The position numbers were made by a program, and so were the translations under genes. DNA of 64,000 nucleotides from Octopus sinensis (lineage: Eukaryota). How positions within the stretch are numbered: the first letter of the stretch is position 1; the number at the start of each line of letters is the position of its first letter. Below the pieces are notes generated by a model. The model had not been told where the DNA came from. It was given only the letters and a program-made list of their open reading frames with translations, and did not search any database. The stretch is from positions 66,774,001-66,838,000 of the forward strand of contig NC_043010.1 in NCBI RefSeq assembly GCF_006345805.1. Reading direction: 5' to 3'. Shown piece after piece: positions 19,401-64,000 of this stretch.

Positions 19401-22400
19401 TCTGTTTCATGGATGTGTCGATATATTGTTGAAGAAGCTGTAAAAGAAATGGGAAATGATAAATTAAACAAAGTAATTCTGATAAAAGAAAAACAAAAAA
19501 CTGCAGAAACTCATGATGATGAATCTACATCATGATATATATATATATGTGTGTGTATATATATATATATTTGCATGTGTGTGTGTGTACCCTTTGTTGA
19601 CATTATGTGAAGGTTTTAAATGAACAGAGAGAGAGTTAGTTTAGATGAGATGCAGTTTGGTTTCGTGCCAGGGAAAAGTACCACTGATGCTATATTCCTG
19701 GTAAGGCAGCTGCAGGAGAAATACCTAGCCAAAGATAAGGCCCTGTACCTGGCTTTTGTTGACATGGAGAAAGCCTTCGACAGGGTCCCCCGATCCCTCA
19801 TATGGTGGTCAATGAGGAAACTAGGAATAGAAGAATGGTTAGTGAGAGCTGTGCAAGCCATGTACAGGGACGCTGCTAGTAAGGTGAGGGTTGGAAATGA
19901 GTGCAGTGAAGAATTCCGGGTAGAGGTAGGGGTCCACCAAGGCTCAGTCCTCAGCCCCCTCCTATTTATCATAGTCCTCCAGGCAATAACGGAGGAATTC
20001 AAGACAGGATGCCCCTGGGAGCTCCTCTATGCTGATGACCTTGCTCTAATTGCTGAGTCATTATCAGAACTGGAGAAGAAGTTTCAGGTGTGGAAGCATG
20101 GTTTAGAATCGAAGGGCCTTAGAGTCAACCTAGCTAAAATCAAAGTCGTAATAAGTAGGAAGGTAGACAAATCACAAACGCCTTCAGGTAGATGGCCCTG
20201 CTCGATCTGTAGAAAAGGTGTAGGTAGAAACTCTATAAGATGCACCAAGTGTAAGCTATGGACACATAAGAGGTGCAGCAATGTCATAGGAAGGCTAACT
20301 AGGAAGATGGTTTTTGTATGTGGCAGATGCTCGGGAGCATTAACCTCTGAAAATCTGCAGAAAACAACTTCCGTCACTTTCCAGGGGGAAAAACTAGAAG
20401 TAGTTGATAGCTTCCGTTATCTTGGTGACCAAGTCAGTAGTGGGGGTGGGTGTGCTGAAAGTGTAACGGCTAGAGTAAGAATAGCCTGGGCAAAGTTTAG
20501 GGAGCTCTTACCTCTGTTGGTGACTAAAGGCCTCTCGCTCAGAGTAAAAGGCAGACTGTATGATGCATGTGTACGAACAGCCATGCTACATGGCAGTGAA
20601 ACATGGGCCGTGACTGCTGAGGACATGCGTAAGCTCGTGAGAAATGAAGCTAGTATGCTCCGTTGGATGTGTAATGTCAGTGTTCATAGTCGACAGAGTG
20701 TAAGTACCTTGAGAGAAAAGTTGGACCTAAGAGGAATCAGATGTTGTGTGCAAGAGAGACGATTGCGCTGGTATGGTCATGTGGTGAGAATGGATGAAGA
20801 TAGGTGTGTGAAAAAGTGCCACACCCTGGCAGTTGAGGGGACCTGTGGAAGAGGTAGACCCAGGAAAACCTGGGTCGAGGTGGTGAAGCACGACCTTCGA
20901 ACTCTAGGTCTCACCAAGGAAATGACCAGAGACCGAGACCTATGGAAGTATGCTGTGCGTGAGAAGACCCGGCAAGACCAGTGAGAACAATCAAAATCAA
21001 ATCATATATCAGAAAGCAGGGGTTAAGTGACCCATCTGTTCGTGTCCGCTGTCAGCCTCGTCTGGCACCCGTGCCGGTGATACGTAAAAGCACCATTCGC
21101 TCATGGCCGTTTGCCAGCTCTGCCTGGCCCCGTGTCGGTGGCACATAAAAGCACCATCCGTTCGTGTTCGTTGCCAGCCTCGCCTGGCCCCGTGCCGGTG
21201 ACACGTAAAAGCACCGTCCGTTCGTGGCCGTTGGCCAGCTCTGTCTGGCCCCGTGTCGGTGGCACGTAAAAGCACCATCCGTTCGTGGCCGTTTGCCAGC
21301 TCTGTCTGGCCCCGTGTCGGTGGCACGTAAAAGCACCATCCGTCCGTGTCCGTTGCCAGCCTCGGCTGGCCCCCGTGCCGGTGACACGTAAAAGCACCGT
21401 CCGCTCATGGCCGTTTGCCAGCTCTGTCTGGCAACCGTGTCGGTGGCACGTAAAAGCACCATCTGTTCGCGTCCGTTGCCAGCCTCGGCTGACCCCCGTG
21501 CCGGTGACACATAAAAGCACCATCCGTTCGTGGCCGTTTGCCAGCTCTGTCTGGCTTCGTGTCGGTGGCACGTAAAAGCACCATCCGTCCGTGTCCGTTG
21601 CCAGCCTCGGCTGGCCCCTGTGCCGGTGACACGTAAAAGCACCGTCCGCTCGTGGCCGTTTGCCAGCTCTGTCTAACTGTGTCGGTGGCACGTAAAAGCA
21701 CCATCCGTTCGCGTCCGTTGCCAGCCTTGGCTGGCCCCTGTGCCGGTGACACGTAAAAGCACCGTCCGTTCGTGGCCGGTTGCCAGCTCTGTCTGGCCCC
21801 GTGTCGGTGGCACGTAAAAGCACCATCCGTTCGTGTCCGTTGCCAGCATCGCCTGGCCCCGTGCCGGTGACACGTAAAAGCACCATCCGTTCGTGGCCGT
21901 TCGCCAGCTCTGTCTGGCACCTGTGCAGGTGGCACGTAAAAAACACCCACTACACTCGCGGAGTGGTTGGCGTTAGGAAGGGCATCCAGCCGTAGAAACA
22001 CTGCCAGATCTGACTGGGCCTGACGAAGCCTTCCAGCTTCACAGACCCCAGTTGACCCGTCCAACCCATGCTAGCATGGAAAACGGACGCTAAACGATGA
22101 TGATGATGATGATGATGATGATCCCCATCATACAAGTGATGTTGCTTGTTTCTAGTCTTCTGTGAAAACATGGGGGAAAGGTTATTTTGCTTGAGAACAG
22201 GTGTAGGTTGGTGACAGGAAGAGCATCAAGATGTTGCAGATCCGTTTCAACAAATTGTGTCTGACCCTCCGACCCATGTGGGGGGCATGTGAAAGTGGAT
22301 GTTAAATGATGACAAAGCGAAATCGGCTTCATAACAAGCCCCATTAAAAGATCAAACCTACCTGAGTTGGGGTAATCCGAATGTAGGCTCTGGCGGTCTC

Positions 22401-36216: not shown

Positions 36217-39200
36217 AGTATATGCAAGCGTGTGTGTGAGCATGTATTCTTGCATCTCTTTGTCTTGACATCACATGATACTTATGAGTATTATGCTCTT
36301 AACCCTTTTGATACCAACCTGGCTGAAACTGGCTCTGACCGAGTACAAATGTCTTGTTTTCATAAGTTTTGAATTAAAATCTTCCACCAAACCTAAGTCC
36401 CAATTTATGTTATTTATTCCCAATATTCTGTGAAGAACATGTCTGGCCAAGGGGGAATTAGTACCTCCCTTAGAAACAAGTGAGGGTTGGTGATAGAAAG
36501 GGCATCTAGCTGTAGAAAATCTAACAAATTACATCCGACCCATGCCAGCATGTAAAAGTGGACGTTAAAATAGTGATGATTATCATCATAACCACCATAG
36601 TCTTACAGCCATTCTTCAGCCACTGGTAGCAAAGGTTGGGGTGGATACTTGTGTGCAGGTTTGTCAAGAAAACTTACCACCAGACTCTTCAATTTTCTTA
36701 ATGCAATGCTTTGCAGTGGGAGGCGCCATAGGATGGCAATTGGGAGGTTTGTCAGACTTCATTATGGCACTCTTCTTCAGAATCTTCTCAACACATTCAT
36801 GTGACAGCTTTCGTATCTGTAATACAGCAGAAACGGAGAAGATTAGAAGAAGGAAAAAAAAAGACAAAAACAAAGAAAATTAAATTAAAAAAAGAGAAAA
36901 ACTGAAGAACAAGTATGGAAAAATATCATATAATCTTCTGGAGGCACATGGTTTAGTGGTTAGGGCAGTGGTTTTCAACCAGGGTTCCGCAAGAAGTTAC
37001 AAAACTGCTAAAATCGGCAGTAGTTTTTAATTCTCCTGTGCAGATATGTGTGCATAAGACTATTAAATTATTGCGCAGGGGTTCCTCGAGCCAGTGGAAT
37101 GTTTCCTTGGGCTTCCGCTCCAGCAAAAAGTTTGAAAAGCACTGGGTTAGGGTGTTGGACATATGATCATAACATTGTGGTTTCAATTCCCAGACTGGGC
37201 GATGTGTTGTGTTCTAGAGCAAAATATTTCAGTGATATCCTGTGACAGACTGGCGTCCCATCCAGGGAGAGGTACATATGCCAGAGAAAGCAGGAAAACA
37301 GTTCCTAACAGAGTAATGTGAACTAACGGTTCCATAATCTGGAGTAGAAGAAATCTGTATTGGTGCAGGTCAGCAACTATTAGTTCAGTAGTTATGATGA
37401 GTGAATGAGGAGTTTAATATCACAGGCCCTTGCCATTTGTTTGAGAGCGGGAAAATGTTGAAAATCAGTCAGATCAGCTGTAGTGGTACCACACATCCAT
37501 TGATAAAAAAAAAACACCATCTGGATGGGATGGGAAGAGAGGCACTCTCTGAATATGAATCTACTACAAAAGATAACCATCTTGTAACTACAGAGATTGA
37601 CCCCATATGCCCCTCCCTTCCAGGGGCTTTCTCCGTCCGGGTTGCGGATCCGTGGAATAAGCTGCCGGACGAGATAGTGAAGATGCCGACGACCGCTCGG
37701 TTCAAAGTCTCTCTTGACCAGAAATGGCCTGAACTCTTTGCATGAACACCCCTGTACATAACTCCATGTCCCCCTACAAGGCCTTGCTTTTTGCTTTTTG
37801 AGCCAAAAAATTAACTTAACTTAAAAGTGACCACACTTGGCCACTTAGTCTTCACTCAATGGTCACACAAACTGACCACAATCAACCAACAAGTATTCCT
37901 CTCTACCAACAAGCAATTATAGACAGTTACTAACCTTTGGCTTCTTGTGGGTAATAAAGGCCAACACACTAAGATAGATCTGTTGGGTAGATGACAGCTC
38001 CCACACTGATGCAGTCTGTGCACACAGCAAATATGATAAACAACGCAGCAGCTGGAAAAAGAACAGATTATGGGTGACTTATATTGAGTATTTATGTGTG
38101 TGTGTGTGTGTGTGTATGTATATATATATATATATATATAGGCGTAGGAATTGCTGTGTAGTAAGTAGCTTGCTTACGAACCACATGGTTCCGGGTTCAG
38201 TCCTACTGCGTGGCACCTTGAGCAAGTGTCTTCTACTATAGCTTTGGGTTGACCAAAGCCTTGTGAGTGGATTTGGTAGACGGCACACACAAAAAAATAA
38301 AAAGATCACTTGTTATTACTTACAGATTTAACCATTGATGTATTGTCACCATCAGAATGTTTGACAAGGATGTCCAGCAATTTCTTGGATACTTCGGAGA
38401 ATCGGTTGATGAGGACAGCATCAGGGACCCTAAAGTCAAGAAGAGAATGACAGGAGGGGTGAGAGGAAATGTAAAGAGCTTTAGGGAGTTACGTTTTGGC
38501 GTGTAGATTGTTTGCATATATACACATACACACCTACACATATATATACACACACACACACACATATATATATACACACACACAGAGAAAATATATACTG
38601 TGAATCATGAGAGACGATTGAATGCTGGGCTCAGTAGTAGGTCCCATATTCCACTGCAGTATGTGGGGTACTAAACCACAAGTTTTGGCAAATAACAACC
38701 ATGCTTACTGTTGAACCAATATTTGATCTTAGTAATTCACCTTATCAGTGTTAGAATTTGCAAGATTATATAATGTTTGTCTATTATGCAATCCTGGTCG
38801 TCATTTGTCAAAACAATGTTTTATTAAGTTTATAATGTCATTCATAAATACTACATATATCGTTGCTTTAGTATAAAAAAGGGCTAACTGGGCATATATG
38901 TCCAGCTAGCCCATTTTGATACAAAGGCCATGATATATATATATTATATACCAGGAAAAATCTAAACCAAGGCAGAACTAGTATCTCAAGTCATTCAGAA
39001 TAAATTAATTAGGGGTAAGGTGAATTTGAAGTCTTACAGCTGTTTCTAGGTAACTTAAGTGGTTGGTTAGCATATCTAGGCACCAGGTATTCTGTCATTA
39101 GAGTCAAGGTGTAACTATTTTAGATGGGGTAAATTTACAGTTTATAAGGAATAAAATAGAAGAATAAAAGTAGAAGTAATTAGAAGAATACAGACAGGAA

Positions 39201-40348: not shown

Positions 40349-43300
40349 TTTAAAGTGCAACACAATAAGAAGAAGACTAAAGCAATGAAGTGGAAGTCTT
40401 ACTTGCTGATCACAACACCGAGAAGATAAAGTGTGGCTGTGAGTCCATCCTCAATGTCCATTGTGTCAAGAGCCGTGACCTGGAAATGTAAACAATTACA
40501 TGTATATGATTAATTATCCACAAAGTTGCAGGAACTTAATTGAAATTTTAACACTCAAACTATGTAACTTAATTTCATGGTTATTCCCATGGTGATGTTA
40601 AATATCTACAGAAACATAGAATTGGGTTTCTCTACAAATTAATTTCTTTATTGCTCACAGGGGAGGGCTAAACAGAGGGGACAAACAAGGGGATTAAGTC
40701 GATTACATCGACCCCAGTGCATAACTGGTACTTATTTAATCGTACCAGGCGGCGAGCTGGCAGAACTGTTAGCATGCCGGGCGAAATGCGTAGCCGTATT
40801 TCGCCTGCTGTTACGCTCTGAGTTCAAATTCCTCCGAGGTCGACTTTGCCGTTCATCCTTTTGGGGTCGATTAAATAAGTACCAGTTACACCCTGGGGTC
40901 GATGTAATCGACTTAATCCGTTTGTCCTCTCTGTATTTAGCCCCTTGTGGGTAGTAAAGAAATAGGTACTTATTTAATCGACCCCAAAAGGATGAAAGGT
41001 AAAGTCGACCTTGGCGGAATTTGAACTCAGAACGTAAAGTCAGACGAAATACCGCTAAGCATTTCACCCAGCATGCTAACGGTTCTGCCAGCTCGCCGCC
41101 TTTCTCTACAAATTGCATTGCCTCATAATAAACTTAACATACTTCAACAAAAGAGATTTTCGAGTGTGACGTTCTTCAATAAAAGACAGACTGGCATATA
41201 AAACCGCTTTCCACAATTGAGGGTAACGAAATCTTGCATGGATACATCAGATTTCGGTAGTAAAAGGGCCAAGGGGGCAAACAAGTTAAGCTATTTTTTT
41301 TTAGCCATCGTGCATGCCTATCTTATGCTAGGAAGGAAACAAAATGGATTTTAACCCTTTAGAATTCAGATTACTGTTAAACGTAATGCTTATTTAATCC
41401 CATCGTTTTGAATGAATTCTGCATTATTACATGGCCAGTGGCAAGTAAAAAGCACCAACCGATCGTGGCCGTTGCCAGCCTCGCCTGGCACCTGTGCCGG
41501 TGGCACGTAAAAAGCACCTACTACACTCATGGAGTGGTTAGCATTAGGAAAGGCATCCCGCTGTAGAAACACTGCCAGATCAGACTGGAATCTGGTGCAG
41601 CCTTCTGGCTTCCCAGACCCCGGCCGAACCGTCCAACCCATGCTAGCATGAAAAACGGATGTTAAACGATGATGATGTTCTTACAATGACATTGCAAGGT
41701 AGGTGCGAGATGCTGGACCTGGCTGGTCGAACATAAAACAGGTAGAAGATGCCTTCTCATAAGCATAAATGGTGGCATAGAAACATAAGTGTAAAATGTA
41801 GACGTCTTGGACTTACCAAAGCTGCAAAGTACTCAGTGTCCGTTTCTTTACCATCGTTTTCTTTGATCACTTCAGTGACAGCAGCAAGCACGGCAGCAAT
41901 CTGTCAAATAAAGAACACAAGACATCGTTTAAGAAATTCTTGAAACAACAACAACAACAGTAGCAATCCTTTCTAATAGAAGCAAAAATTGAAATTTTAG
42001 GAGAGAGGTTTAGTTGAGGACATCGATCCCCCAACCCAACCGGGTTCGACTGGTATGTAATTTATTGACCCTGAAACGAATGAAAGGCAAAGTCGACCTG
42101 GAAGGAATTTGAACTCAGAACGCAAGGATGGATGAAATACTGTTAAGCGTTTTGTATGGCATGCTAATGACTCTGCTAGCTGACCACCTTAACGATAATA
42201 ACAATAGTCCTTTCTACTATAGGCACCAGGCCTGAAATTTTGGGAGATGGGGGCTAGTTGATTACATTGAGCCCCAAAAGGATAAGGCAGAGCTGACCTT
42301 GGCCAGATTTGAATCCAGAATGTAAAAATGGATGAAACACAGATGGACCGCACTGCTGGCTCATTGCAACAACAACAACAATAATAATGATTTCAAATTT
42401 TAATACAAGGCCAGCAATTTCAGGGGAGAGTGTAAGTTGATTACAATCGACCGTAGTACACAACTGGTACTTACTTTATTGACCCTGAAAAAAATGAAAG
42501 ACAAAGTCGACCTTGGTGGAATTTGAACTCAGAGCATGAAGACGGGTGAAATATCGATAAGCATTTTCCCCTGACATGCTAACAATTCTGCCAGCTCACC
42601 ACCACCATAACAATAACAAGAGCACTCAGAGAGTGCAAACTTCCACCAAAGCAACACCAACATCCTTTCAACGATTAGCCAGAGATGATTTTTAAAATGA
42701 GAATGTCTGACATAAACTCAACTGCTCTCAAAATTAAGTAAAAAAAACGGAAAAATAATCCAGAATCCTTGTTCGGCACCAGATCGATCCCAAAATCTAA
42801 TCAGTTCATGCCAGTCATGAGGTCAAGCATCCCTGAAAGGTTCATCCGAATCCGCCCAGTGGTTCTTGAGATATCTTGTCCCCGGACAAACAAACATGAC
42901 TGAAAACAATACCTCCACCTTCGCTAAGGCGAGATAATAGTTAAGTTAATTTTTTTTGCTCAAAAAGCAAGGCCATGTAGGGGGACATGGAGTTATGTAC
43001 AGGGAGGGTGTTCATGCAAAACGTTCAGGCCATTTCTGGTCAAGAGAGACTTTGAACCGAGTGGTCCTCGGCATCTTCACTATCTTGTCCGGCAGCTTAT
43101 TCCACGGTTCCGCAACCCGGATGGAGAAAGCCCCTCTCCTTCGATTGAGATGAACTCGTCCCAGATAGAGCTTTTCGGAGTGACCCCGCAGCCGACGCTC
43201 TGGAGCAGGAGCGAAGAACACCTCTTTCGAGAGGTTACACTTTCCGCCTATGATGTTGTGAGCAAGAATGAGATCACCACGGCGTCGTCGTTTTTCTAGA

Positions 43301-46300
43301 GAATAAAGGTCGAGCGTCTTCAGCCTTTCTTCATAAGACAAATGCTTGAGACCAAGAACCATGCGGGTAGCCAGCTTCTGGACTCTTTCGAGATGATGTA
43401 TGTCTTCGAGGAGATAAGGAGAAGAGGCTTGAATCCCGTACTCCAATATAGGTCTCACCAGCATGACATAATAATGGTTTCTAATTTTGGTACAAGATCA
43501 CAAACCATGAAAGATAATACAATTCCAGTCATTAATATTTCTCTGGTTTCTGAATTCCATTAATGTTCTGCAATGCTAAAAATAATAGAGTAACAAAGCA
43601 ATCACAAACTTGGTGGACAGATGCAGGTATATAGAGGTTGGCTAGATGGGTTTACATATCATCTAGCAGTATCGCCCAGCGTTGCTCGGATTTGTTTCCA
43701 CCCTTTAGAATTGGAATTTTTGAAAAGTAAAAATTTTGCATTATGTAGCTTGTTATTCTCTTTAAGTGAACGTTTTTCTGGTTGAAATACACCGAAAAAA
43801 TGGCGACACAGCAGTCAAAACATAGTAAAAAATAGGGATTTGCATAGGAAAAAAAAAAGCACCTTTTTGATGTAAATAATTTTTGGTGTTAACATGGTCC
43901 GATTTGAATTTTTTCTTCTACGGAATGAAGAGCAAGCCTTCTTCTATCATACTCTCAATTTTGGTCAACTTGCGCCGCAGGGTCTCGGAGGAAATAGTGT
44001 TAATTGAAAGCTACCAAACCTGCCATACACAGACAAGTTCAGCTTTATAAATATATATAGAGATAACAGAATAAAGAACAAAAATGATCCATTATCAATA
44101 TTTTTCCAATCATGAAAGATAAGCTTGGTTAGTTGTTATATCTTCATGGTTTCCCTTGGTTTCTCTTGGAGATTCTGCCATTTCTGTGTGGTGCTGGTGG
44201 TGGTGGTGGTGTGCTGCTGTGAGGATTAGCAGGATTCAGTAGTGTTGGGAGTATAGGTGGCACTGGAGATTGAAAGTTAGCAATAACAGAAACCTTACTT
44301 CAGGAGGTCAGATGATTAAGGGCTGACAAAGAAGCTGGTGATGTCAGCCCAATGATAACATTATCCGGATTAACAAAAATGCTTGAGGATGAATAAGATC
44401 AACACATACCCAGTACTTTGTATGTATTCCCAGTCCACATATAATCTTTCCCAAAGCTATAATTCAAACCATTTATCACAAAGAGTGTATTTAACTCTTT
44501 AGCATTCAGATCGTTTTAAATTACTCATACATATATATATATATATCCACACATGCACACACATATATCCATAAATGTGCCGGTGGCATGTAAAAGCACA
44601 CACTACACTCTTGGAGTGGTTGGCATTAGGAAGGGCATCCAGCTGTACAAACTCTGCCAGATCAGATTGGAGTCTGGTGTAGCCATCTGGTTCGCCAGCA
44701 CTCAGTCAAATCGTCTAACCCATGACGATGATGATGATGATGATCAAGATGGCTTTCAACAATGTTTTGTTCTTTATAACTTTGTTAAATTCTTTTACAT
44801 GCAAATTTGAAATGTTGTCACATGGTGTTTAACTCTTTAGTACTCAAACTGGCCATATCCAGCCCAAAATATTCTACCCGCTCTATGTTCAAACTGGCCA
44901 GATCTGGCATGTCACACCCACCCTACAATTCTAAGAATAAACACCCACATCATCAAAATCTCAAAGCTACAAGATAATTTGAATGCTAAAGGGTTAAATA
45001 TCAATGATTCACAATTACGTGGATTTAATAGGGCCACTGACATGTATTGGTGTTGTATTGTTTAACTATCATCAACATCATCGTTTAACGTCTGCTTTCC
45101 ATGCCAGCATGGGTTGGATGATTTGACTGAGTGCTGGTGAACCAGATGGGTGCACCAGACTCCAATCTGATCTGACAGAGTTTCTACAGCTGGATGCCCT
45201 TCCTAATGCCAACCACTCTGAGAGTGTAGTGGGTGCTTTTATGTGCCACCAGCATGAGGGCCAGTCAGGTGGTACTGGCAACGGCCACGCTCAAATGGTG
45301 CTTTCTATGTGCCACCTGCACAGGAGGCAGTCTAGCGGCACTGGCAATGACCTCACTCGAATGTTTTTTCATGTGCCACCATCCATAATAATTTGAATGG
45401 CATCTGGAAGATCTCCATCACTTCTCTCAAAATACTCATTTTAATTCAAACTAAATTTGCTATATTTTGAGCAGGCATCAACGCATCACAAGGAGCAACA
45501 GCATCAGCACAAACAGGAGGTTTTTGCCTCATTGTTTGTCTGTCCGTCTTTGATAACAGCCCTAATATCTCCTTTTATCAGGAATGATGATGTAGAGACG
45601 AACAGTTAACAGTGTTGGGGAGCAGAAAGATTAAAGTTGAAGTAGAGACAAAACGTTAGCTGACATGGAGGACTGGAAGCCACCTGAATATTGGAAAAGT
45701 GTTACCTGTATCATGATAATTCACAACAGATATCAAAATGCTGACACCATGATTGCTTCTCCATGCTTTGTGAACACTGTAAGACGTGATATGGACAGCA
45801 AGCGAGACTGCAAAGCCGTGGTCAGCAGGGAAGGACACAGCAGGCATTCTGACGACATCTGCGCACCAGAATTTATACAACTGCAGGACAAGGTAAAGGA
45901 AGATCCAAGCAAGGGGTGTGAAAGACAAATTCTGACAGCCAAGGAGAACCACTTGATGAAAGCAAAGAAGCTCCTGAACAAGCCGAGGCATCTAGCTGAG
46001 CTGGGGTACTTCTCAGATGGAAAGAAATTCTACCAGGACCAGTTGCACAACATCCATAACAACAGGTGGCTTGCCTACAATCCATGTGATGCCTCACATC
46101 TGAAAACCAAGTTCCACCAAATTGCGATTAATCTTTGAGTGCGTCTTCAGTGAAGATGAAGTCATGCTGCCCCCTCATCTTTTAAAAGGGCCTTGGGCTA
46201 AATTCTGGCAGCTATGTGAAGCTGTTGGAAACTGTGGTCAAACCCTGGCTGGAGAGGGTTACTACTGGAAGGCCATATGTGTGACTGCAGCATTCAGCTC

Positions 46301-58300: not shown

Positions 58301-61300
58301 TAATTTTTAGCCAATCAGATCCATCTTTTCCCTTCACACCATGGCGATGTCATGGAAACAGTCAAGTTTTTCTTTTTTTTCTGCATTTTTGAAATGGGAC
58401 AAAGGCAATCATAAATTACTCTTACTCTTTTACTTGTTTCAGTCATTTGACTGCGGCCATGCTGGAGCACCGCCTTTAATCGAGCAACTCGACTCCGGGA
58501 CTTATTCTTTTGTAAGCCCAGTACTTATTCTATCGGTCTCTTTTGCCGAACTGCTAAGTAACAGGGACATAAACACACCAGCAATGCTAGGGGGACAAAC
58601 ACAGACACACACATGCATACATATATACGACGGGCTTCTTTCAGTTTCCGTCTACCAAATCCACTCACAAGGCTTTGGACAGCCCGATGCTATAGTAGAA
58701 GACACTTGCCCAAGGTGCCACACAGTGGGACTGAACCCAGAACCATGTGGTTGGTAAACAAGCTATTTACCACACAGCCACTCCTGCGCCTTAGTTTTTG
58801 AAAAATAACAACATTATAAAGCCACTCCCCCACTCTCAAAAACTTCCCAAAACTTAATGGATGGAGACTTTCTCCTTTTTCCTGGGCGTGCAACCCTGTG
58901 GTTTGCCAGATCCTGACAAACAATCCAATGCATGATGGCATGGAAAAACAGACATTAAGGGTTAAATGATGAGGATTACAAAATCACTGATGCTGAAATA
59001 ATGAAAGTAATAAACTAATGTATTGCAAATAAATTTTGCCATACATTATAGGGGCAGGAGTGGCTGTGTGGTTAGCAGCTTGCTCACCAACCACATGGTT
59101 CTGGGTTCAGTCCCACTGCGTGGCACTTTGGGCAAGTGTCTTCTACTATAGCCTCAGGCTGACCAAAGCCTTGTGAGTAGATTTGGTAGATGGAAACTGA
59201 AAGAAGCCCGTCATATATACGTATGTGTGTGTATATGTTTGCCCCCCCCCCACCATCGCTTGACAACCGATGCTGGTGTGTTTACATCCCTGTAACTTAG
59301 CGGTTTGGCAAAAGAGACCAGTAGAATAAGTACTAGGCTTACAAAGAATAAGTCCTGGTGTCGAATTGCTCAACTAAAGGCGGTGCTCCAGCATGGCTGC
59401 AACAAGTAAAAGAGTAATACATCACAAACCATAACCCTTAGACGATTTCAGGTGGTCACTATATGATTCTGTACAAATAACACTGTCTGCTGGATGATAA
59501 GAATGGATAAATCCGATTGGATAAAATCCCCCCCCCCCCAATTCTATTTTAAAAGGTCACCGATTATCTTTTGTCAATTTCTCCAAAAATCTGAAACTAG
59601 TTGCGATATTCATTTAACTGGCAGGAAAAACTACATCCATGTAGAAATTCTCGATAGAACTGAAAGAGATATTCAAACCAAGAAGATCGTCACAACATTT
59701 AATGTAAGATAACAAAACAGCCATGAACATAAAACTAAAAAATATGAGAGAAAGAAGGGGTACTACTTAAGAAAAGCGGTCCCGGTGCGCGCTTGCTAGT
59801 CGTGACTAGACGATCCTTACTTTGTGTTTTTTTTTTTTTTTTTTACTTTGTTTAAAAAAATTATTTATTTTGTGTTTTATTTACTTTGCTAGGTAGTCGT
59901 CGTAGGATCGACTAGTCACGACTAGCTAGCGCGGATGCGCGCACCTGGCCCGCTTTTCTTATGTAGTACCGAAAGAAGGTTTGAAATGCTGATGTGAAAC
60001 AATCCTTAGGTGTTTTTTGTCAAAGTTCTAGGGGTTCATTGAAACAAATGCCAGCCAAGTTGGTCAAGAGAGGGGCTTTTTAAAAAAAATTTTTTTCTTT
60101 TTTATTACTGACGTTCTTCCATAATCACTCTTCTCAGCGCTTGTACAAACCAGAGAGGATTTAGTTCCATATTATATCATAACCGAGACTATGAATCTTG
60201 GTTTCAAGAAAACCACATTCCAAAACGTGCAGAGAGAGAGAGAGAGATCAACAAATTGTTATTTTTACATAACACACACTGTTAGCAATGTCATTTTCAA
60301 TCCATTTTTCCATGCATCGTAATTTATGCAGCAAATGCTATCAAGGGAGATAACCTCTTCAGTGTGCACAACTCGGGCAGACACGAAACTCCTTAATGCG
60401 ACCAATTCAAGGGTATATTTATGCATTTTTTTACACTTCCCTGTATACTGAAAATCACGAAGTTCGTATTTGATAAGGAATCAGGGTTTTGTTGATGCAA
60501 ACAGATATACTGGCTCGGCACAGATAACATTACTGGTGTCCTGTTTCATTTACCAATCATATCACCAAGCACAGGGAATGCCTGTCCCTTTGTTACCCCA
60601 TCAAAGTGTCCTGTTATTCTCGGCGGTGAACTTTTAGGTAAAAAAACCCCAGAAAAGTACAAGTTTAAAAAATTTTTGGGGGAATTTTCAAAATTTCCTT
60701 CTTGAAATTAGCCATCACTCATTTCAGCTTCACTCTCGCTAACCACATCGTTAGAATAGCTCTCGGCTTCGCTGGCCAAATATTCATCGCCACTGTCCAG
60801 GATTAATATAGAATTATCAGAATCACTTTCTTCCTCCTCCTCTTCGTCGTCATCCTCCTCCTCCTCATCATCATCTTCATCCCCACTGCTGTCATCATCA
60901 TCATCATCGTCGTCCTCATTGTCACCATTATCAGCCGAGCCATTGTTGCCAGCGTCACCACCAAAGGCGTCACCCTCACCAATCGTGTCACCAAATCCAC
61001 CGATCGTCCAGTCATCGTCATCTACATTGCCGCCAAAATGTGGTCCAATGTTGACATAGATAGTAGAAAACACACTACATCTTACCTCTTTGCTGACAGC
61101 ATCACTGTTTGCCCTCAACCTGTGCACATTTCCAAACGTTGTATTTGTACATTCAGTGAAGTTTGTGACAAATGTCTGATAAGTGGATTTCCCAATGCTG
61201 GCATTATCATTATCAGTAATATCCATTCTGCAGCTGTTGGCGGCATTCAATTTGGCAACGGCAGCTTCCGTTAATCCACTGTTACCTGCAGATATAATTA

Positions 61301-61967
61301 GATTTCAATTAGTTTTCTGACAACAATATTGATTTCAAATTTTGGCACAAGGCCAGCAATTTTGGGGGAGGGGCAAGCAGAGTCGATTAAATCGACCCCT
61401 AGTGCTCAACTGGCACTTATCTTATTGACCCTGAAAAGATGAAAAGCAAAGCTGACCTTGGCGGAATTTGAACTCAGAACGTCAAGATGGACAAAATGAC
61501 ACAAAGCCTGGTGTGCTAACAATTCTGCCCTTATTTCTGACAGCAATGGTGAAAGTATTTACAGGTGGTTGGTGGGGGAAGCATGTATAATCATTCATCC
61601 CCAACCCCCAATACCCCCATGTTCCAATCTCACCATTGTCATCTATACCTGAAACCTGCAGGACTTTCTGAATGGTAGGTATGCCTAATGAGAAATTACC
61701 CTTCTTTTTCTTGTCGGTAAGGCTGTCTGATGATGAGCCATGTCTCATGTGGCCCCTTTAAAAAAAAAAAAAAAAAAAAAAATTGCATATGCCTGACCAT
61801 AGCAAAATGCAGAACTCCTCCTAACATAACATAACTTGCCTTTTCCATCACTTTCAAACAGCCTGGTTTAGAGCAAGCTCAAATCCTTGCCAAAACGTTC
61901 AACCCCACTCTCTCCAAAAGTCTTACTCCACCCTTTGGGGCATTCTTTCAGAAGTTGATTGGGCCAT
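2025..61967 (-). CDS. RRP12: RRP12-like protein (nucleolar HEAT-repeat/NUC173 ribosome biogenesis factor); spliced gene, 3' end off the left edge
   Basis: Translated exons match remembered RRP12 motifs in order: [82 protein letters not shown]. All junctions are GT-AG and phases are consistent. Model c1-c31 totals 3582 nt (1194 aa). Confidence 0.95.
3026..3133 (-). CDS. RRP12: coding exon c30 (TKPSKP...[17 protein letters not shown])
   Basis: 108 nt, phase 1-1, AG/GTGAGT. Confidence 0.93.
4002..4335 (-). mobile_element. RTE 3'-end stub (one of many; others near 4852, 23190, 30965, 41435, 45075, 48950, 52425, 56555)
   Basis: (CAT)n-CGTTTAACGTCC...GGATGCC.TTCCTAACGCCAACCACTCC, the reverse complement of the LINE 3' end. 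Confidence 0.88.
4366..4571 (-). CDS. RRP12: coding exon c29 ([12 protein letters not shown]10..[16 protein letters not shown])
   Basis: 206 nt, phase 2-1, AG/GTATGT. Confidence 0.94.
6545..6700 (-). CDS. RRP12: coding exon c28 (YKAIYDL...[18 protein letters not shown]...)
   Basis: 156 nt, phase 2-2, AG/GTAGGC. Confidence 0.92.
7121..7212 (-). CDS. RRP12: coding exon c27 (MSTL...[17 protein letters not shown])
   Basis: 92 nt, phase 0-2, AG/GTAAAT. Confidence 0.93.
7815..7972 (-). CDS. RRP12: coding exon c26 (DVTPDLIE...[14 protein letters not shown]...)
   Basis: 158 nt, phase 1-0, AG/GTGAGA. Confidence 0.93.
9267..9374 (-). CDS. RRP12: coding exon c25 ([15 protein letters not shown]...IFDFK)
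   Basis: 108 nt, phase 1-1, AG/GTAAGT. Confidence 0.92.
9621..9975 (+). mobile_element. tRNA-derived SINE family S3
   Basis: TGGCCCAGTGG A-box, GGTTTCGATTCCC B-box; inserted between (TA)n tracts. Confidence 0.75.
9997..10386 (-). mobile_element. non-autonomous Helitron, subfamily H1
   Basis: Near-identical to 43663-44063; CTAG mutated; flanked by (TA)n. Confidence 0.75.
10393..10785 (+). mobile_element. maT/DD37D-like transposon 3' end with right TIR
   Basis: [13 protein letters not shown]...[28 protein letters not shown]; ends CACCCTG|TA. Confidence 0.85.
10855..10969 (-). CDS. RRP12: coding exon c24 ([20 protein letters not shown]...)
   Basis: 115 nt, phase 0-1, AG/GTAAGT. Confidence 0.94.
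13229..13309 (-). CDS. RRP12: coding exon c23 ([13 protein letters not shown]...IIPE)
   Basis: 81 nt, phase 0-0, AG/GTAAGA. Confidence 0.95.
13893..14117 (+). mobile_element. tRNA-headed SINE with a hammerhead-ribozyme-like body
   Basis: TGGCATAGTGG A-box, degenerate B-box; TSD AACATTTTCATT(A/G)TG; hammerhead motif at 14033-14078. Confidence 0.75.
14033..14078 (+). ncRNA. minimal type I hammerhead ribozyme motif (Penelope-type)
   Basis: GACAC-CTGATGA-A-GGCTG(10 nt)CAGCC-GAAA-TG-TT-GTGTT. Confidence 0.7.
15242..15400 (-). CDS. RRP12: coding exon c22 ([17 protein letters not shown]...SSKG)
   Basis: 159 nt, phase 0-0, AG/GTAAGT. Confidence 0.95.
15588..16139 (-). mobile_element. L1/Tx1-like ORF1 (RRM-type) 5' fragment
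   Basis: 183-aa open frame with V.L.FDS..EA..FA..PL....FLP.Y.G..LT...V.GLPP....EWI pattern; runs into (TA)n; homology from memory only. Confidence 0.55.
16270..16468. mobile_element. Tc1-like TIR ends back-to-back across a microsatellite
   Basis: GGTGTTTCCATTATTTTGTCCAACCCCTG (to 16368) and CAGGGGTTGGACAAAATA (16451-16468). Confidence 0.65.
16734..16827 (-). CDS. RRP12: coding exon c21 ([13 protein letters not shown]...SNLK)
   Basis: 94 nt, phase 2-0, AG/GTGAGC. Confidence 0.88.
17021..17809. mobile_element. hAT MITE containing two nested TTAA MITEs
   Basis: TIR CAGTGGTTCTCAA/TTGAGAACCCCTG; 8-bp TSD GGTTAGAT/GATTAGAT. Confidence 0.8.
17204..17423. mobile_element. piggyBac-like MITE family 1 (also 17455-17642, 35280-35538, 35570-35789, and near 31600, 32120, 36300)
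   Basis: TTAA|CCCTTT...AAAGGG|TTAA with a shared interior of about 220 bp. Confidence 0.8.
17877..18504 (+). mobile_element. RTE 3' fragment with 7 x 63-bp tandem units and (GAT)n tail
   Basis: AAAAAGCACC recurs every 63 bp (one shortened unit); same terminal about 170 bp as the LINE at 19628-22122. Confidence 0.9.
19063..19290 (+). mobile_element. SINE S1 monomer (others near 5490, 7310, 12630, 55525, 62130, 62480)
   Basis: Full head-to-AATAAAGAAAT copy. Confidence 0.85.
19376..19437 (-). CDS. RRP12: coding exon c20 ([20 protein letters not shown])
   Basis: 62 nt, phase 0-2, AG/GTAGCT; supplies the phase needed between c19 and c21. Confidence 0.8.
19620..20984 (+). CDS. RTE reverse transcriptase (C-terminal 454 aa, frame intact) with C4HC3 PHD-type finger
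   Basis: [57 protein letters not shown]; ATG at 19620 is probably not native. Confidence 0.92.
   Translation: MNRERVSLDEMQFGFVPGKSTTDAIFLVRQLQEKYLAKDKALYLAFVDMEKAFDRVPRSLIWWSMRKLGIEEWLVRAVQAMYRDAASKVRVGNECSEEFRVEVGVHQGSVLSPLLFIIVLQAITEEFKTGCPWELLYADDLALIAESLSELEKKFQVWKHGLESKGLRVNLAKIKVVISRKVDKSQTPSGRWPCSICRKGVGRNSIRCTKCKLWTHKRCSNVIGRLTRKMVFVCGRCSGALTSENLQKTTSVTFQGEKLEVVDSFRYLGDQVSSGGGCAESVTARVRIAWAKFRELLPLLVTKGLSLRVKGRLYDACVRTAMLHGSETWAVTAEDMRKLVRNEASMLRWMCNVSVHSRQSVSTLREKLDLRGIRCCVQERRLRWYGHVVRMDEDRCVKKCHTLAVEGTCGRGRPRKTWVEVVKHDLRTLGLTKEMTRDRDLWKYAVREKTRQDQ
19628..22122 (+). mobile_element. RTE-clade LINE, 5'-truncated, antisense in the RRP12 c19-c20 intron
   Basis: RT ORF, then a 3' UTR with tandem repeats, ending in a (GAT)n tail at about 22096-22122. 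Confidence 0.93.
21050..21925 (+). repeat. about 14 x 60-61 bp tandem array in the LINE 3' UTR, largely alternating A/B units
   Basis: Recurrent core CGTAAAAGCACC..TCCGTTCG..GCCAGC..CTGGC. Confidence 0.92.
22362..22516 (-). CDS. RRP12: coding exon c19 ([21 protein letters not shown]...)
   Basis: 155 nt, phase 1-0, AG/GTAGGT. Confidence 0.96.
22929..23040 (-). CDS. RRP12: coding exon c18 ([10 protein letters not shown]...RPQLR...)
   Basis: 112 nt, phase 0-1, AG/GTAAGT. Confidence 0.94.
23845..23896 (+). ncRNA. hammerhead-like motif with palindromic stem III
   Basis: GTCT-CTGGTGA-AGGG(..)TCCT-A-GAAA-CAGCTG-TA-AGAC; core A6>G. Confidence 0.6.
24317..24432 (-). CDS. RRP12: coding exon c17 ([10 protein letters not shown]...[13 protein letters not shown])
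   Basis: 116 nt, phase 1-0, AG/GTAAGA. Confidence 0.94.
25938..26059 (-). CDS. RRP12: coding exon c16 ([16 protein letters not shown]...)
   Basis: 122 nt, phase 2-1, AG/GTTAGT; LDFPRSWL motif. Confidence 0.95.
26159..26263. repeat. 23-bp minisatellite GGAGTGTGAGAAAGGGCGGAGAC, about 4.5 copies
   Basis: Directly visible. Confidence 0.92.
26648..26790 (-). CDS. RRP12: coding exon c15 ([12 protein letters not shown]...[13 protein letters not shown]...)
   Basis: 143 nt, phase 0-2, AG/GTAAGT. Confidence 0.94.
26889..27303 (-). mobile_element. SINE S1 head-to-tail dimer
   Basis: Two units; 18-bp TSD ATACCACTGAATG(A/C)TAGT. Confidence 0.88.
27858..27893 (-). CDS. RRP12: coding exon c14 ([12 protein letters not shown])
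   Basis: 36 nt, phase 0-0, AG/GTAAGT; fills the expected gap (human ACGRQAHPVMRK). Confidence 0.8.
28240..29053. mobile_element. foldback element / long-TIR MITE
   Basis: Inverted arms of about 285 bp (28240-28527 and 28765-29053) around a spacer of about 240 bp; TSD unclear. Confidence 0.85.
29137..29316 (-). CDS. RRP12: coding exon c13 (NVFKECV...[14 protein letters not shown]...LE)
   Basis: 180 nt, phase 0-0, AG/GTAAGA. Confidence 0.92.
30105..30216 (-). CDS. RRP12: coding exon c12 ([13 protein letters not shown]...TAADALQ)
   Basis: 112 nt, phase 2-0, AG/GTAACT. Confidence 0.92.
31483..31574 (-). CDS. RRP12: coding exon c11 (ALYDYQP...[14 protein letters not shown])
   Basis: 92 nt, phase 0-2, AG/GTAAGT. 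Confidence 0.93.
33516..33614 (-). CDS. RRP12: coding exon c10 ([11 protein letters not shown]...LNAQLIT)
   Basis: 99 nt, phase 0-0, AG/GTAAGT. Confidence 0.93.
33861..34248 (-). mobile_element. tRNA-derived SINE family S2 with CORE-like segment (others near 2579, 27390, 47935, 51177, 51746, 58420, 59050)
   Basis: GGAGTGGCTGTGTGG A-box, GGTTCAGTCCC B-box, GGCA(T/C)CTTGGGCAAGTG segment, internal (TA/TG)n, (AAAGAGT)n tail; TSD ACAGTA. Link to described octopus OR/OK SINEs is recalled, not verified. Confidence 0.85.
35055..35182 (-). CDS. RRP12: coding exon c9 ([15 protein letters not shown]...[10 protein letters not shown])
   Basis: 128 nt, phase 1-0, AG/GTAAGT. Confidence 0.92.
36678..36816 (-). 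CDS. RRP12: coding exon c8 ([15 protein letters not shown]...[13 protein letters not shown])
   Basis: 139 nt, phase 0-1, AG/GTAAGT. Confidence 0.92.
36966..37144. mobile_element. hAT MITE inserted in a tRNA-SINE head
   Basis: TIR CAGTGGTTTTCAA/TTGAAAAGCACTG; perfect 8-bp TSD GGTTAGGG. Confidence 0.88.
37617..37823 (+). mobile_element. short CR1 3' stub of the same family
   Basis: [28 protein letters not shown], then a TTAACTTAAC tail; near-identical to the 42938 copy. Confidence 0.88.
37935..38051 (-). CDS. RRP12: coding exon c7 ([12 protein letters not shown]...FITHKKPK)
   Basis: 117 nt, phase 0-0, AG/GTTAGT. Confidence 0.92.
38324..38429 (-). CDS. RRP12: coding exon c6 ([21 protein letters not shown]...)
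   Basis: 106 nt, phase 2-0, AG/GTAAGT. Confidence 0.92.
39321..39626 (-). mobile_element. non-autonomous Helitron, subfamily H2
   Basis: Same termini and interior as 57002-57290; A^T insertion site. Confidence 0.8.
40078..40138 (-). ncRNA. hammerhead-like motif, left arm of palindrome (sense to the RRP12 pre-mRNA)
   Basis: GATAA-CTGAAGA-GATG(..)CATC-C-GAAC-CTC-G-GAG-TT-TTATC. Confidence 0.6.
40171..40231 (+). ncRNA. hammerhead-like motif, right arm of palindrome
   Basis: GATAA-CTGGAGA-GATG(..)CATC-C-GAAA-CTC-G-GAG-TT-TTCTC. Confidence 0.6.
40403..40479 (-). CDS. RRP12: coding exon c5 ([25 protein letters not shown])
   Basis: 77 nt, phase 0-2, AG/GTAAGA. Confidence 0.9.
40643..41101. mobile_element. 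SINE S1 (+, 40743-40964) nested antisense inside SINE S1 (-)
   Basis: 16-bp TSD GGTACTTATTTAATCG at 40727-42 and 40965-80. Confidence 0.88.
41817..41900 (-). CDS. RRP12: coding exon c4 ([28 protein letters not shown])
   Basis: 84 nt, AG/GTAAGT, strong RRP12 motif. Confidence 0.95.
42938..43470 (-). mobile_element. CR1-clade LINE 3' fragment
   Basis: ORF 43012-43464: [42 protein letters not shown]; (TTAAC)n tail. Confidence 0.9.
43663..44063 (-). mobile_element. non-autonomous Helitron, subfamily H1
   Basis: Same 3' hairpin and CTAG as H2 but a different interior; matches 9997-10386. Confidence 0.75.
45640..47280 (+). mobile_element. degenerate Tc1/mariner (maT/DD37D-like) transposase, split by a SINE trimer
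   Basis: AKKLLNK..H.AE..YFSD.K.F.QDQ.HN..N.RWLA; [21 protein letters not shown]; HSAPCHT; after the [21 protein letters not shown]. Confidence 0.85.
46470..47043 (+). mobile_element. tRNA-derived SINE family S1, head-to-tail trimer
   Basis: GGCGGCGAGCTGGCAG head, GAGTTCAAATT B-box, three units; TSD AAGATGAAG. Confidence 0.88.
50764..50928. mobile_element. piggyBac-like MITE family 2 (also near 11015, 25680, 44833, 49545, 57920)
   Basis: TTAA|CCCTTT(A/G)GCATT...AATGCTAAAGGG|TT(A/G)A. Confidence 0.7.
52835..53085 (-). mobile_element. 3' fragment of a second RTE-like LINE family
   Basis: Minus-strand translation [23 protein letters not shown]...[23 protein letters not shown] with a stop. Confidence 0.65.
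55026..55378 (+). mobile_element. mariner 5' end (left TIR plus HTH start)
   Basis: TA|TTGGGTCATCC start; [36 protein letters not shown] from 55211. Confidence 0.85.
57002..57290 (-). mobile_element. non-autonomous Helitron, subfamily H2
   Basis: Minus strand: A|TC...CCCGAGCAACGCCGGG hairpin..CTAG|T, no TSD. Confidence 0.8.
59759..59970. mobile_element. Mutator-like MITE
   Basis: TIRs of about 60 bp starting GGTACTAC (31/34 identical at the ends); perfect 9-bp TSD GAAAGAAGG (59750-58, 59971-79). Confidence 0.85.
60708..61085 (-). CDS. in-frame acidic read-through of exon c3 (candidate alternative last exon, 125 aa)
   Basis: Frame stays open past the c3 donor to TAA at 60708; D/E-rich with mixed codons, not a pure microsatellite. 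Confidence 0.55.
   Translation of the reverse strand, partial: VRCSVFSTIYVNIGPHFGGNVDDDDWTIGGFGDTIGEGDAFGGDAGNNGSADNGDNEDDDDDDDDSSGDEDDDEEEEDDDEEEEEESDSDNSILILDSGDEYLASEAESYSNDVVSESEAEMSDG
61086..61285 (-). CDS. RRP12: coding exon c3 ([13 protein letters not shown]...[23 protein letters not shown])
   Basis: CTGCAG acceptor, GAG|GTAAGA donor, 200 nt; resembles human [20 protein letters not shown]..HKE. Confidence 0.8.
61649..61755 (-). CDS. RRP12: candidate coding exon c2 ([19 protein letters not shown]...VLQVS)
   Basis: Poly-T+AAG acceptor; CAG|GTATAG phase-1 donor joins c3 to give VSGNSGLT (human SGRSDLT); in-frame ATG at 61748. Confidence 0.55.
61927..61967 (-). CDS. RRP12: candidate coding exon c1 ([13 protein letters not shown])
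   Basis: ATG at 61967; GA|GTAAGA donor in phase 2 matches the phase needed by c2; no recognisable homology. Confidence 0.4.
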
Positions 61968-63285
61968 TTGCGACTCTCTAGTTATTACCATTGATTCATG
62001 CAGAAAGAGAAAGGCATGCAATTAGGTGGTTTATAGTGACATACAACTGCTTATTTTTCTGGGGGTACAACTGGTTATCTAACTTCTGAAAGAATGCCAA
62101 TCTCTGAAGAGGACAAACCCTTTAACTTATTTCTTTATTGCCCACAAGGGGCTAAACATAGAGAGGACAAACAAGGACAGACGAAGGGATTAAGTCGATT
62201 ACATCAACCCCAGTGTGTAACTGGTACTTAATTTATCGACCCCGAAAGGATGAAAGGCAAAGTCGACTTTGGCGGAATTTGAACTCAGAACATAACGGCA
62301 GACGAAATACAGTTAAGCATTTTGCTTGATGTTCTAACGTTTCTGCCAGCTCGCCCTCTAACTTAACACACAAATTCAACATTTAATAAAAGGTGATGGA
62401 AACAGCAGTTGGGAGTAAGGCATAAAAAAAAAAAAAAAGCCATGTGGTTAAGGAGCTTGCATTAAAAATATGTAGTTTTGTAATGGTGGTGAGCTGGCAG
62501 AATCATTAGCATGCCGGGTGAAGTGCTTAGTGGTATTTTGTCTGCCGTTACGTTCCGAGTTCAAATTTGCCTTTCATCCTTTCAGGGTCGATAAATTAAG
62601 TACCAGCTACACACTAGGGTCGATGTAATCGACTTAATCCCTTTGTCTATCCTTGTTTGTCCTCTCTGTTTAGCCCCTTGTGGGCAATAAAGAAATAAGA
62701 AATGTTAGCACACTGCACTAAGTGCTTAGTGGTATTTCATCTGCCGTTAGGTTCTGAGTTCAAATTCCACTGAAGTCGATAAATCAAGTACTAGTTATGC
62801 ACTGGGGTCAATGTAATCAACTTAATCCCTTTGTCTGTCCCCTCTGTTTAGCCTCCTGTGGGCAATAAAGAAATATGTAATTTTGGGTTCTGTCCACTTG
62901 CACATCACTTGTACAAAAGCTCAATGCCTTGTAACTGGGTAGACGGAAACTGTGTGGAAGCCCGTCATGTGCGTGTATGTCTCAATAACTTAACGGTTTA
63001 GCAGAAGTAATCACTAAAATAGACACCAGATTTAAGAACTGGGGTCGATTTGACTACACACTTCAAGACGGTGCTCCAGCATGGGCGCCCTCCAATGACT
63101 AAAACAAGAGACAATGAATTCCCCACTCTTCTCCATGGTCAGTAAGGTTTCCATAAAGCCATACAAACTGGTGTCTGTCCTTCATTAGTAATCTCTTATT
63201 AAAGACTTCAGCAAATACAAACCCTCAGGCTACCCCTTACACGAGGACCCCTTTGCTTAATTCCAAACCTCTATGTGTTTCTTAC

Positions 63286-63330
63286 TGGATCGGAAAATCT
63301 GTCAGATCGTACTGCGACAGTGAAGTTTAC
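63286..63330 (-). other. possible non-coding 5' exon
   Basis: CCA|GTAAGA donor in unique, non-repeat sequence upstream of c1; 5' boundary not defined. Confidence 0.25.
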
Positions 63331-64000
63331 ATACATTGTCTATACATGTTGTATACCACAAGTTCTACATGCTGTTGTATGCCTCATGCCTACACCTAAG
63401 CATACCTACTGAGGCAGGAGGTGTACCACAACAACATGTATAACTTACCATGGATAATGTGTAGACTACTTCCACACTATGTGAGGTATACTACACAACT
63501 GTAATCTATCCTATCCCTGATCTGATGACATGGACATCAAATACAGGCTACTTCGTTTAATATGACGTATAAACTACGCATTGCAATGTGATGCAATTCC
63601 ACCTGTACGATATGTTTAATATATAGTCACTGCATTACGGTATCATTCAGTCACTCTCCCAATATCAGAACACCCTAAAAAAATTATCTTATTCCAACCC
63701 ACTTCACCAAGTAATTGTTAATTCACACCATTAACGGAGATAAACAAGTTTTCTATAATTGGTAACTGGCGAGACTAGTGAGGCTTAAACAGTATTTGCA
63801 GTATATTTTCATCGATCCGAATTGGTTTTTTCCCCAGACATTTTCATAATTTAAAGCATTAATCCGTTCTGTATAAATACGGTGAAGAAAAACTCTATTA
63901 TACAAGACTAATTTTTAGGATATTAAATACGATTCACAGAAATGAAATATTTCTTCATACATAAAGGTAGTAGGTAGTTTGTAAGAATATTGCTTTTATC

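Follow-up and report, generated by a model that had tools for sequence, protein, structure and literature searches.

What becomes of the second coding exon of RRP12 in Octopus sinensis when its reading frame is followed past the 5' splice site? In the stretch analysed here, the 64,000 nucleotides (nt) from 66,774,001 to 66,838,000 of contig NC_043010.1 (hereafter the window), the frame of this exon runs on through the intronic GTAAGA and stays open for 125 codons. A preliminary description of the window, made from the letters alone, had noticed this frame and offered two explanations: (a) intronic polyadenylation gives rise to a truncated RRP12 isoform, or (b) the 5' exons of RRP12 have been duplicated in part, the copy at 60.7 to 63.3 kb having diverged and acquired a new tail, and the true first exons lie beyond position 64000. 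The coordinates of the frame hold, including the TAA stop at 60710-60708. We lean towards the view that exon 2 can also serve as a composite terminal exon of RRP12 with a conserved coding extension, so that donor bypass and intronic polyadenylation would yield an isoform of 241 amino acids (aa). The parts of this view may be graded separately. Judged from a comparison of three octopus genomes, the extension (60711-61085) is a real feature and very probably conserved coding sequence, and a short isoform of 241 residues probably exists.

The evidence that carries this view comes from the orthologous loci of O. vulgaris (OX597827.1, locus L002) and O. bimaculoides (CM046614.1, locus L001), with both of which the window is collinear from 61541 to 59971. 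The same frame is open in both species and ends at the same TAA, and the only indels within it, of 3 or 6 nt, all fall in the acidic repeat of the tail. Frame-breaking mutations, which the preliminary description had suggested looking for in orthologous sequence, occur in neither species. Moreover, the first 22 tail codons past the donor are identical in the three species save for one synonymous change. Between O. sinensis and O. bimaculoides the tail differs at 16 of 372 sites (4.3%), and at 8 of 281 (2.8%) when the repeat is left aside, while exon 2 has diverged by 5.5%, the intron upstream of it by 10.2% and the 730 nt past the stop by 13.3%, with 14 indels. This deficit of substitutions in the tail corresponds to a Fisher p of 3e-6 against the upstream intron and 3e-7 against the downstream sequence. 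Counted in 50-nt windows, there are 0-6 substitutions inside the open reading frame (ORF) and 13-14 in the two windows just after the stop, the first of which also has 20 gapped positions. Sequence constraint ends at the TAA stop.

The pattern of substitutions points in the same direction. By Nei-Gojobori counting, the O. sinensis and O. bimaculoides tails differ by 8 synonymous and 8 nonsynonymous changes (binomial p=0.004), which gives a synonymous rate (dS) of 0.126, a nonsynonymous rate (dN) of 0.027 and a ratio of 0.21; for exon 2 the ratio is 0.25. The dS of the tail matches both that of exon 2 (0.144) and the divergence of the flanks. The tails of O. sinensis and O. vulgaris differ by 3 synonymous changes and no nonsynonymous one, and the other two sense frames of the tail have dN/dS of 4.2 and 0.84. 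As a control, we took the first 375 nt of 30 other RRP12 introns. In all of these the divergence is 6.8% or more, mostly 8-13% where an alignment was possible, and each has at least 2 indels, nearly all of frame-breaking lengths, whereas the start of intron 2 has the lowest divergence of the 31 and is the sole one without a frame-breaking indel. A conserved frame and stop, indels in multiples of three, a low dN/dS and a constraint limited to the ORF are together what protein-coding sequence under purifying selection would leave behind, and we read the tail in this way. Conservation due to double-stranded RNA or an editing-complementary sequence was considered separately and rejected, as the folding of exon plus tail is not better than that of shuffled sequences (z=+0.9).

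The identity of the gene itself is not in doubt at the level of the locus. When reverse-complemented, the whole window is found letter for letter at 10563-74562 of an O. sinensis locus (L008) on CM016872.1 of assembly GCA_006345805.1, the gene of which is RefSeq XP_029645117.1, 'RRP12-like protein isoform X1 [Octopus sinensis]'. It has the RRP12 HEAT/ARM domains, with PF25772 (HEAT_RRP12_N) and PF08161 (RRP12_HEAT) as the Pfam domains on record that define it, and is orthologous to human and yeast RRP12. Threading XP_029645117.1 exactly through the locus gave the exon map used here: a minus-strand gene of 34 coding exons, 30 of which map inside the window, encoding a canonical protein of 1,307 aa, a HEAT/ARM-repeat ribosome-assembly factor. 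Among its 33 introns, intron 2 is the longest with 19,185 nt, and the next longest measures 3,129 nt. The gene extends over 68.9 kb in O. sinensis and 67.6 kb in O. vulgaris but is much shorter, 38 kb, in O. bimaculoides; for intron 2 the figures are 19.2 kb in O. sinensis and about 8.7 kb in O. bimaculoides, and the gap in gene size consists mostly of repeat insertions.

On this map the exon from which the frame extends is coding exon 2 and not exon 3, as had been assumed in the preliminary description. Its in-frame codons begin at 61283, and its 3' end reads ...AGC AAA GAG, followed by GTAAGA. Alone, exon 2 aligns to residues 86-122 of human RRP12 (PDB 7wts_K). Joined to exon 3, it gives an unbroken alignment to residues 86-151 (...HKE|...; E=1.8e-14), and therefore the canonical junction from 61086 to 41900, which had been named as the alternative to read-through, is right; it is also the junction of the RefSeq map, across the longest intron. 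The exon bearing the RW.KG.S..SNP motif, for which a search upstream had been proposed, does exist. It is RRP12 exon 1, its peptide starts MHPLKRKKSKR and goes on to include RWKRGQSCTSNP, and its sequence as threaded from XP_029645117.1 is MHPLKRKKSKRTHGVTAKRNAARWKRGQSCTSNPTFREHRDRVGQGYTK. The exon-1 peptide has an isoelectric point (pI) of 11.8 and is basic, resembling a nuclear localization signal (NLS).

Explanation (b) can be judged at this point. The position of the motif-bearing exon outside the window (64415-64562) agrees with it, and the expectation of first exons beyond 64000 was correct to that extent, but this is the only exon 1 of the gene, with no second copy. Exon 2 and the tail are likewise present once within the 89-kb locus, which takes in 10 kb upstream of the gene. 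In O. vulgaris and O. bimaculoides, too, exon 2 is a single-copy part of the canonical gene. RefSeq joins exon 1, 61285-61086 and 41900 in one model, XP_029645117.1, whose product matches human RRP12 without a break. We thus regard a duplicate as refuted. The basic KKKK N-terminus that the preliminary description attached to the product also has to be abandoned, since its exon (61757-61700) is in no annotated model and has no O. bimaculoides counterpart. The stretch lies in a 2.1-kb block of intron 1 (61542-63619) that is shared with O. vulgaris, whereas O. bimaculoides shows only matches resembling short interspersed nuclear elements and no unique counterpart. From the earlier estimate of about 225-241 aa, the upper figure, the long Asp/Glu tract and the absence of HEAT repeats stand.

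Besides an open frame, an isoform of this kind would need a place to end. Within the 730 nt that follow the stop there is a single AATAAA and no ATTAAA; it lies at 60106-60101, 602 nt downstream of the stop, and is indeed the first, as had been stated. An AATAAA is found 593 nt after the stop in O. vulgaris and an ATTAAA 604 nt after it in O. bimaculoides. In each of the three species this hexamer is the sole canonical one in the interval, its position being kept though the hexamer itself differs. A frame that runs past the donor to an in-frame intronic stop, with a poly(A) hexamer downstream, is the arrangement of a composite terminal exon, and its presence here is consistent with such a function.

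The tail that would be added is highly acidic (pI 4.05), with 49 Asp and Glu, a single Arg and no Lys. Its codons are varied, as noted before (GAT 18, GAC 12, GAG 11, GAA 8). Tandem Repeats Finder reports degenerate period-3 TCC/TCA arrays at 60832-60919, within the acidic core, and the N-terminal part of the tail contains degenerate short repeats. The C-terminal part, in which ILIL is flanked by Ser and Asp, is unchanged in the three species; we take it to resemble a SUMO-interacting motif (a [VIL][VIL]x[VIL]-like core with acidic or Ser flanks), a pattern matched by eye only. The tail is predicted to be disordered, and an AlphaFold2 single-sequence model of it has a mean predicted local distance difference test score of 44, a low confidence from which we draw no more than support for disorder. 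Made up of the true exon 1, exon 2 and the tail, the proposed product comes to 241 aa and keeps residues 1-116 of RRP12. Exons 3-34, and with them the HEAT/ARM repeat body, are left out by construction, and no RRP12 Pfam domain matches exon 2 plus tail even at E<=10. Such a product is an isoform of the RRP12 gene and not a HEAT-repeat protein. The positions of all these elements are collected in Table 1.

Table 1. Elements of RRP12 around intron 2, in window coordinates.
Feature	Position	Strand	Basis and remarks
RRP12 exon 1	64562-64415 (window-equivalent)	-	Outside the window, 415 nt beyond its end
RRP12 coding exon 2, 200 nt, (G)NSGLTEAAV...DAVSKE	61086..61285	-	RefSeq exon map; common to canonical and proposed short isoform
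5' splice site GTAAGA of intron 2	61080..61085	-	Identical in three species; GTA is tail codon 1 (Val)
In-frame extension, 125 sense codons, VRCSVF...MSDG	60711..61085	-	Translation; frame conserved in O. vulgaris and O. bimaculoides
Acidic core, degenerate (GAT/GAC/GAG/GAA)n trinucleotide repeat	60830..60923	-	All interspecies length variation falls here
TAA stop of the extension	60708..60710	-	Position kept in three species
Putative 3' untranslated region, about 600 nt	60107..60707	-	Near-neutral rate with some conserved patches
AATAAA poly(A)-signal hexamer, with an A/T-rich run after it	60101..60106	-	Hexamer match; candidate cleavage signal
RRP12 coding exon 3	41817..41900	-	Joined to the exon 2 donor across intron 2 in canonical splicing

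How the two forms might arise from one gene can be pictured as follows. In most transcripts the strong donor GAG|GTAAGA at 61085 would be spliced to 41900 and yield the 1,307-aa RRP12. In a fraction of them the donor would be bypassed, translation would go on for 125 codons to the TAA, and cleavage would follow the AATAAA about 600 nt past the stop, inside the single long intron 2. Such a transcript would have its stop in the last exon and should thus not be a target of nonsense-mediated decay. Its product would combine the basic, NLS-like exon-1 peptide with the rest of the RRP12 N-terminal extension and an acidic disordered tail, and would lack the repeat body that binds the head of the pre-40S particle. 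One would expect the short form in the nucleus or nucleolus, where it might act as a decoy, regulator or adaptor through the N-terminal extension or, by analogy, as an acidic chaperone-like binder of basic ribosomal or histone proteins. Two features of the gene fit this scheme. Intron 2 is the only long intron of RRP12. In addition, RefSeq isoform X2 (XP_036365053.1), a protein of 1,170 aa with the end ...QEDDDGE, is accounted for by reading past the donor ATG|GTGAGT of exon 29 (3026-3133, minus strand) at 3026, which adds Gly-Glu and a stop, and therefore RRP12 has at least one annotated isoform made by donor bypass.

How unusual is the open frame in itself? At the other 32 donors of RRP12 read-through gives 0-42 codons with a median of about 4, as opposed to 125 at exon 2. 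In about 21 other animals the frame past the homologous donor mostly ends after 6-40 codons, and in one of them (P0026) it reaches 121. Many of the database 'proteins' from other animals (P0002-P0026) are in fact the homologous RRP12 exon read past the same donor (...HKE, then V from GTN), and a phase-0 exon boundary after HKE is therefore common to many database sequences; one of them, P0018, enters a tandem TDSVTLTSGDY repeat after the next exon.

An exhaustive HMMER search with exon 2 plus tail against 1.84 billion cluster representatives returned RRP12 N-terminal exons from many animals and no homologue of the tail; P0015 and P0025 were set aside as low-complexity matches only. In Pfam, exon 2 plus tail gave only sub-threshold acidic or low-complexity matches (PPP4R2, NOA36, Nop14 and others). 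The idea that the tail might be a copy of the C-terminal acidic regions of RRP12 was rejected as well, BLASTP giving only short low-complexity matches. An exact look-up of the ATG-started ORF among protein records found nothing, and neither did word-indexed protein searches with the read-through product, either unmasked or with Asp/Glu masked, although the latter are uninformative, as the index missed even the O. bimaculoides orthologue. The other candidate cephalopod material available consists of spliced transcripts only (P0028, 54% identical), and in the literature we found nothing on intronic polyadenylation of RRP12. The simplest account of the origin of the tail is de novo, from intronic sequence together with expansion of a trinucleotide repeat, in the octopod lineage or earlier.

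Several observations weigh against a short isoform and have to be taken into account. No tail-bearing protein is present in the collections searched, including NCBI nr and transcript assemblies, and the RefSeq annotations of O. sinensis and O. bimaculoides as well as the annotation of O. vulgaris therefore do not model the tail. The length of the ORF is by itself weak evidence, being within chance. GTAAGA is not a weak site, because the same hexamer is found at the donors of exons 4, 12, 16 and 22, and with so strong a donor read-through should be a minority event. The comparison is limited to three closely related Octopus species. Outside the repeat the coding-specific signal amounts to 8 substitutions only, 5 of them synonymous (p of about 0.02), and within the GAN repeat third-position differences can come from slippage without selection. 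Finally, the antisense frame that shares third positions with the tail scores equally well (pN/pS, the corresponding ratio of proportions of differences, 0.12).

These reservations are best weighed against what else could produce the pattern. The constrained segment might be a non-coding intronic element, i.e. a regulator of splicing or polyadenylation or an enhancer near exon 2, whose open frame is incidental to a stop-poor GAN repeat. The acidic stretch 60806-61056 is in fact open in 5 of the 6 frames, and the window, rich in repeats, has many long open frames: 1.5% of its codon starts have 125 or more open codons after them, mostly in minisatellites. The missing annotation and the strong donor would suit such an element too, and some patches after the stop are also well conserved. 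It is less easy to see, however, why its synonymous sites should change at the neutral rate while the nonsynonymous ones are about 5-fold constrained, or why the conserved block should start at the donor and end exactly at a stop codon. The count of frame-breaking indels (none in 375 nt, as compared with 14 in 952 nt of flank) speaks against it as well, as do the control introns, no other of which is conserved in this way at its start, and the lack of excess RNA structure. We therefore regard a non-coding element as unlikely, though worth keeping in mind. An open frame that arose by chance and has no function, its conservation merely reflecting local variation of the mutation rate among close relatives, seems quite improbable to us. 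Only three congeneric species and 16 substitutions are available to oppose it, and one of the roughly 21 read-through ORFs at the same donor in other animals, that of P0026, does reach 121 aa. On the other hand, both flanks have diverged by 10-13% with many indels, the deficit of substitutions has a p of about 1e-6, and by a rough estimate the probability that 375 nt would stay free of frameshifts and new stops at the flank rate is of the order of 1e-3.

The tail might also be translated, but from a transcript of another architecture, either an unspliced RNA that retains the intron or a nested unit transcribed from a separate promoter within intron 1. An internal ATG within exon 2 (MDITD..., 61226) would be available for this purpose. 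Yet the frame is continuous with that of exon 2 and is preserved right from the donor in the first 22 codons, the poly(A) hexamer is conserved in position, and a retained intron with splicing downstream would make the stop premature and the transcript a likely target of nonsense-mediated decay; such an arrangement is in our opinion improbable. As for the opposite strand, a Ser/Pro-rich plus-strand frame (60760-61056) is open for 99 codons, and the low pN/pS of the antisense frame could be attributed to an unannotated coding exon there. This frame is closed by stops at 60757 and 61057, whereas the conserved block reaches further on both sides, to 60711 and 61085; the frame has neither a start codon nor convincing splice sites, and the annotations of the three loci show no plus-strand gene at this place. 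We hold a plus-strand exon to be very improbable. The truncated isoform proposed as explanation (a), the best supported of these readings, has gained the conservation of frame and stop in three species, a dN/dS of about 0.2, a constraint that ends at the stop and a conserved hexamer, and still lacks an annotated protein with the tail.

A bolder version of the donor-bypass isoform may be put forward, although we consider it rather unlikely as a whole: octopods evolved a new 125-residue acidic disordered peptide from an intron and a GAN repeat and fused it to the N-terminal extension of RRP12, thus obtaining a small protein, unmatched in other animals, that regulates 40S maturation in the nucleus or serves there as a decoy. 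This would be a de novo birth of coding sequence within an essential housekeeping gene, already under purifying selection. Should a short isoform of this sort be real, an essential and conserved ribosome-assembly gene would also yield a small protein that shares with RRP12 only its N-terminal extension, with a tail for which no homologue is detectable. It would be a clean example of new, intron-derived coding sequence coming under selection and possibly a lineage-specific regulator of 40S biogenesis. The short isoform is missing from all three current octopus annotations. The case also indicates that, where an exon is seen to read past its donor, a comparison between species can decide the matter even if RNA data are lacking, and the analysis corrects the RRP12 5' structure that had been deduced from the window alone.

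Some further observations concern the remainder of the locus. Minisatellite arrays in RRP12 introns, at about 17,700-18,500 and about 21,000-22,100, are open in all three minus frames and also on the plus strand; their stop-free stretches, of up to 282 codons, are the source of most long open frames in the window. In intron 20 a 191-codon open frame (15591-16163, minus strand) has no Pfam match. Neither the O. vulgaris nor the O. bimaculoides locus contains it, and it is therefore probably a recent O. sinensis-specific insertion, perhaps derived from a transposon. Related open frames with similar ends occur in several places on both strands, e.g. at 43015-43497 (minus), 37401-37742 (plus) and 42928-43296 (plus), and have the appearance of a single interspersed repeat family; neither 43015-43497 nor 37401-37742, which were the two scanned against Pfam, gave a match. 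For exon 23 of O. sinensis RRP12 (10855-10969) no match exists in the O. bimaculoides locus, in whose sequence 1,019 letters are N. At the corresponding position the O. bimaculoides protein XP_052828973.1 has about 25 residues (IIPYYLASKIQRTSVWSIDIHQIES) that match window intron sequence at 13123-12953, and these extra residues are probably a gene-model artefact of the assembly gap.

Composite terminal exons and intronic polyadenylation are known from the secreted IgM heavy chain, the short form of CSTF3 and soluble FLT1. The exon 2 extension, if read correctly, would be an isoform of this known kind, its tail being lineage-specific. As in those cases, the exon is extended past its 5' splice site, an in-frame stop and a poly(A) hexamer lie in a long intron, and the N-terminus would be kept while an isoform-specific C-terminal peptide is gained. 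Unlike them, the octopus case is known from sequence alone and its donor is strong, not weak, and the peptide is unusually long (125 aa), appears to be under purifying selection and would replace about 91% of the parent protein. Isoform X2 is closer at hand, since it comes from the same gene and also by donor read-through, but it adds two residues only, retains the repeat body in full and, unlike the exon 2 extension, has a RefSeq entry.

Set beside canonical RRP12, the short form would come from the same gene and share residues 1-116, equivalent to the human N-terminal extension up to ...HKE, while lacking the ARM/HEAT helices, the C-terminal extension and any RRP12 Pfam domain. In human pre-40S structures (7WTS-7WU0) RRP12 has 44 helices and long N- and C-terminal extensions; both termini coordinate CK1, and the ARM/HEAT helices together with the C-terminal extension bind 18S rRNA h34-40, BYSL, SLX9 and BUD23 (PMC9723619). 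An N-terminal, NLS-bearing fragment of another 40S assembly factor, Tsr1 (residues 1-84), enters pre-40S particles alone (PMC9723619). This is a precedent for a short N-terminal piece that binds the particles and might compete with the full-length factor, as proposed here for the short RRP12, although the fragment belongs to a different protein and was engineered, not a natural isoform, and the likeness to the RRP12 N-terminus is by analogy only.

Long tracts of Asp and Glu are also a feature of nucleolar and histone-binding proteins such as nucleolin, nucleophosmin, UBF and SET/NAP. The octopus tail resembles them in its long Asp/Glu run with Ser, in its predicted disorder, in the basic NLS-like region that would accompany it and in the nucleolar character of the parent gene. 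In contrast to these acidic chaperones, the octopus product has no homology to them in sequence or domains and, according to Pfam, neither a nucleoplasmin core nor a NAP domain nor RNA recognition motifs, and the likeness is one of composition only.

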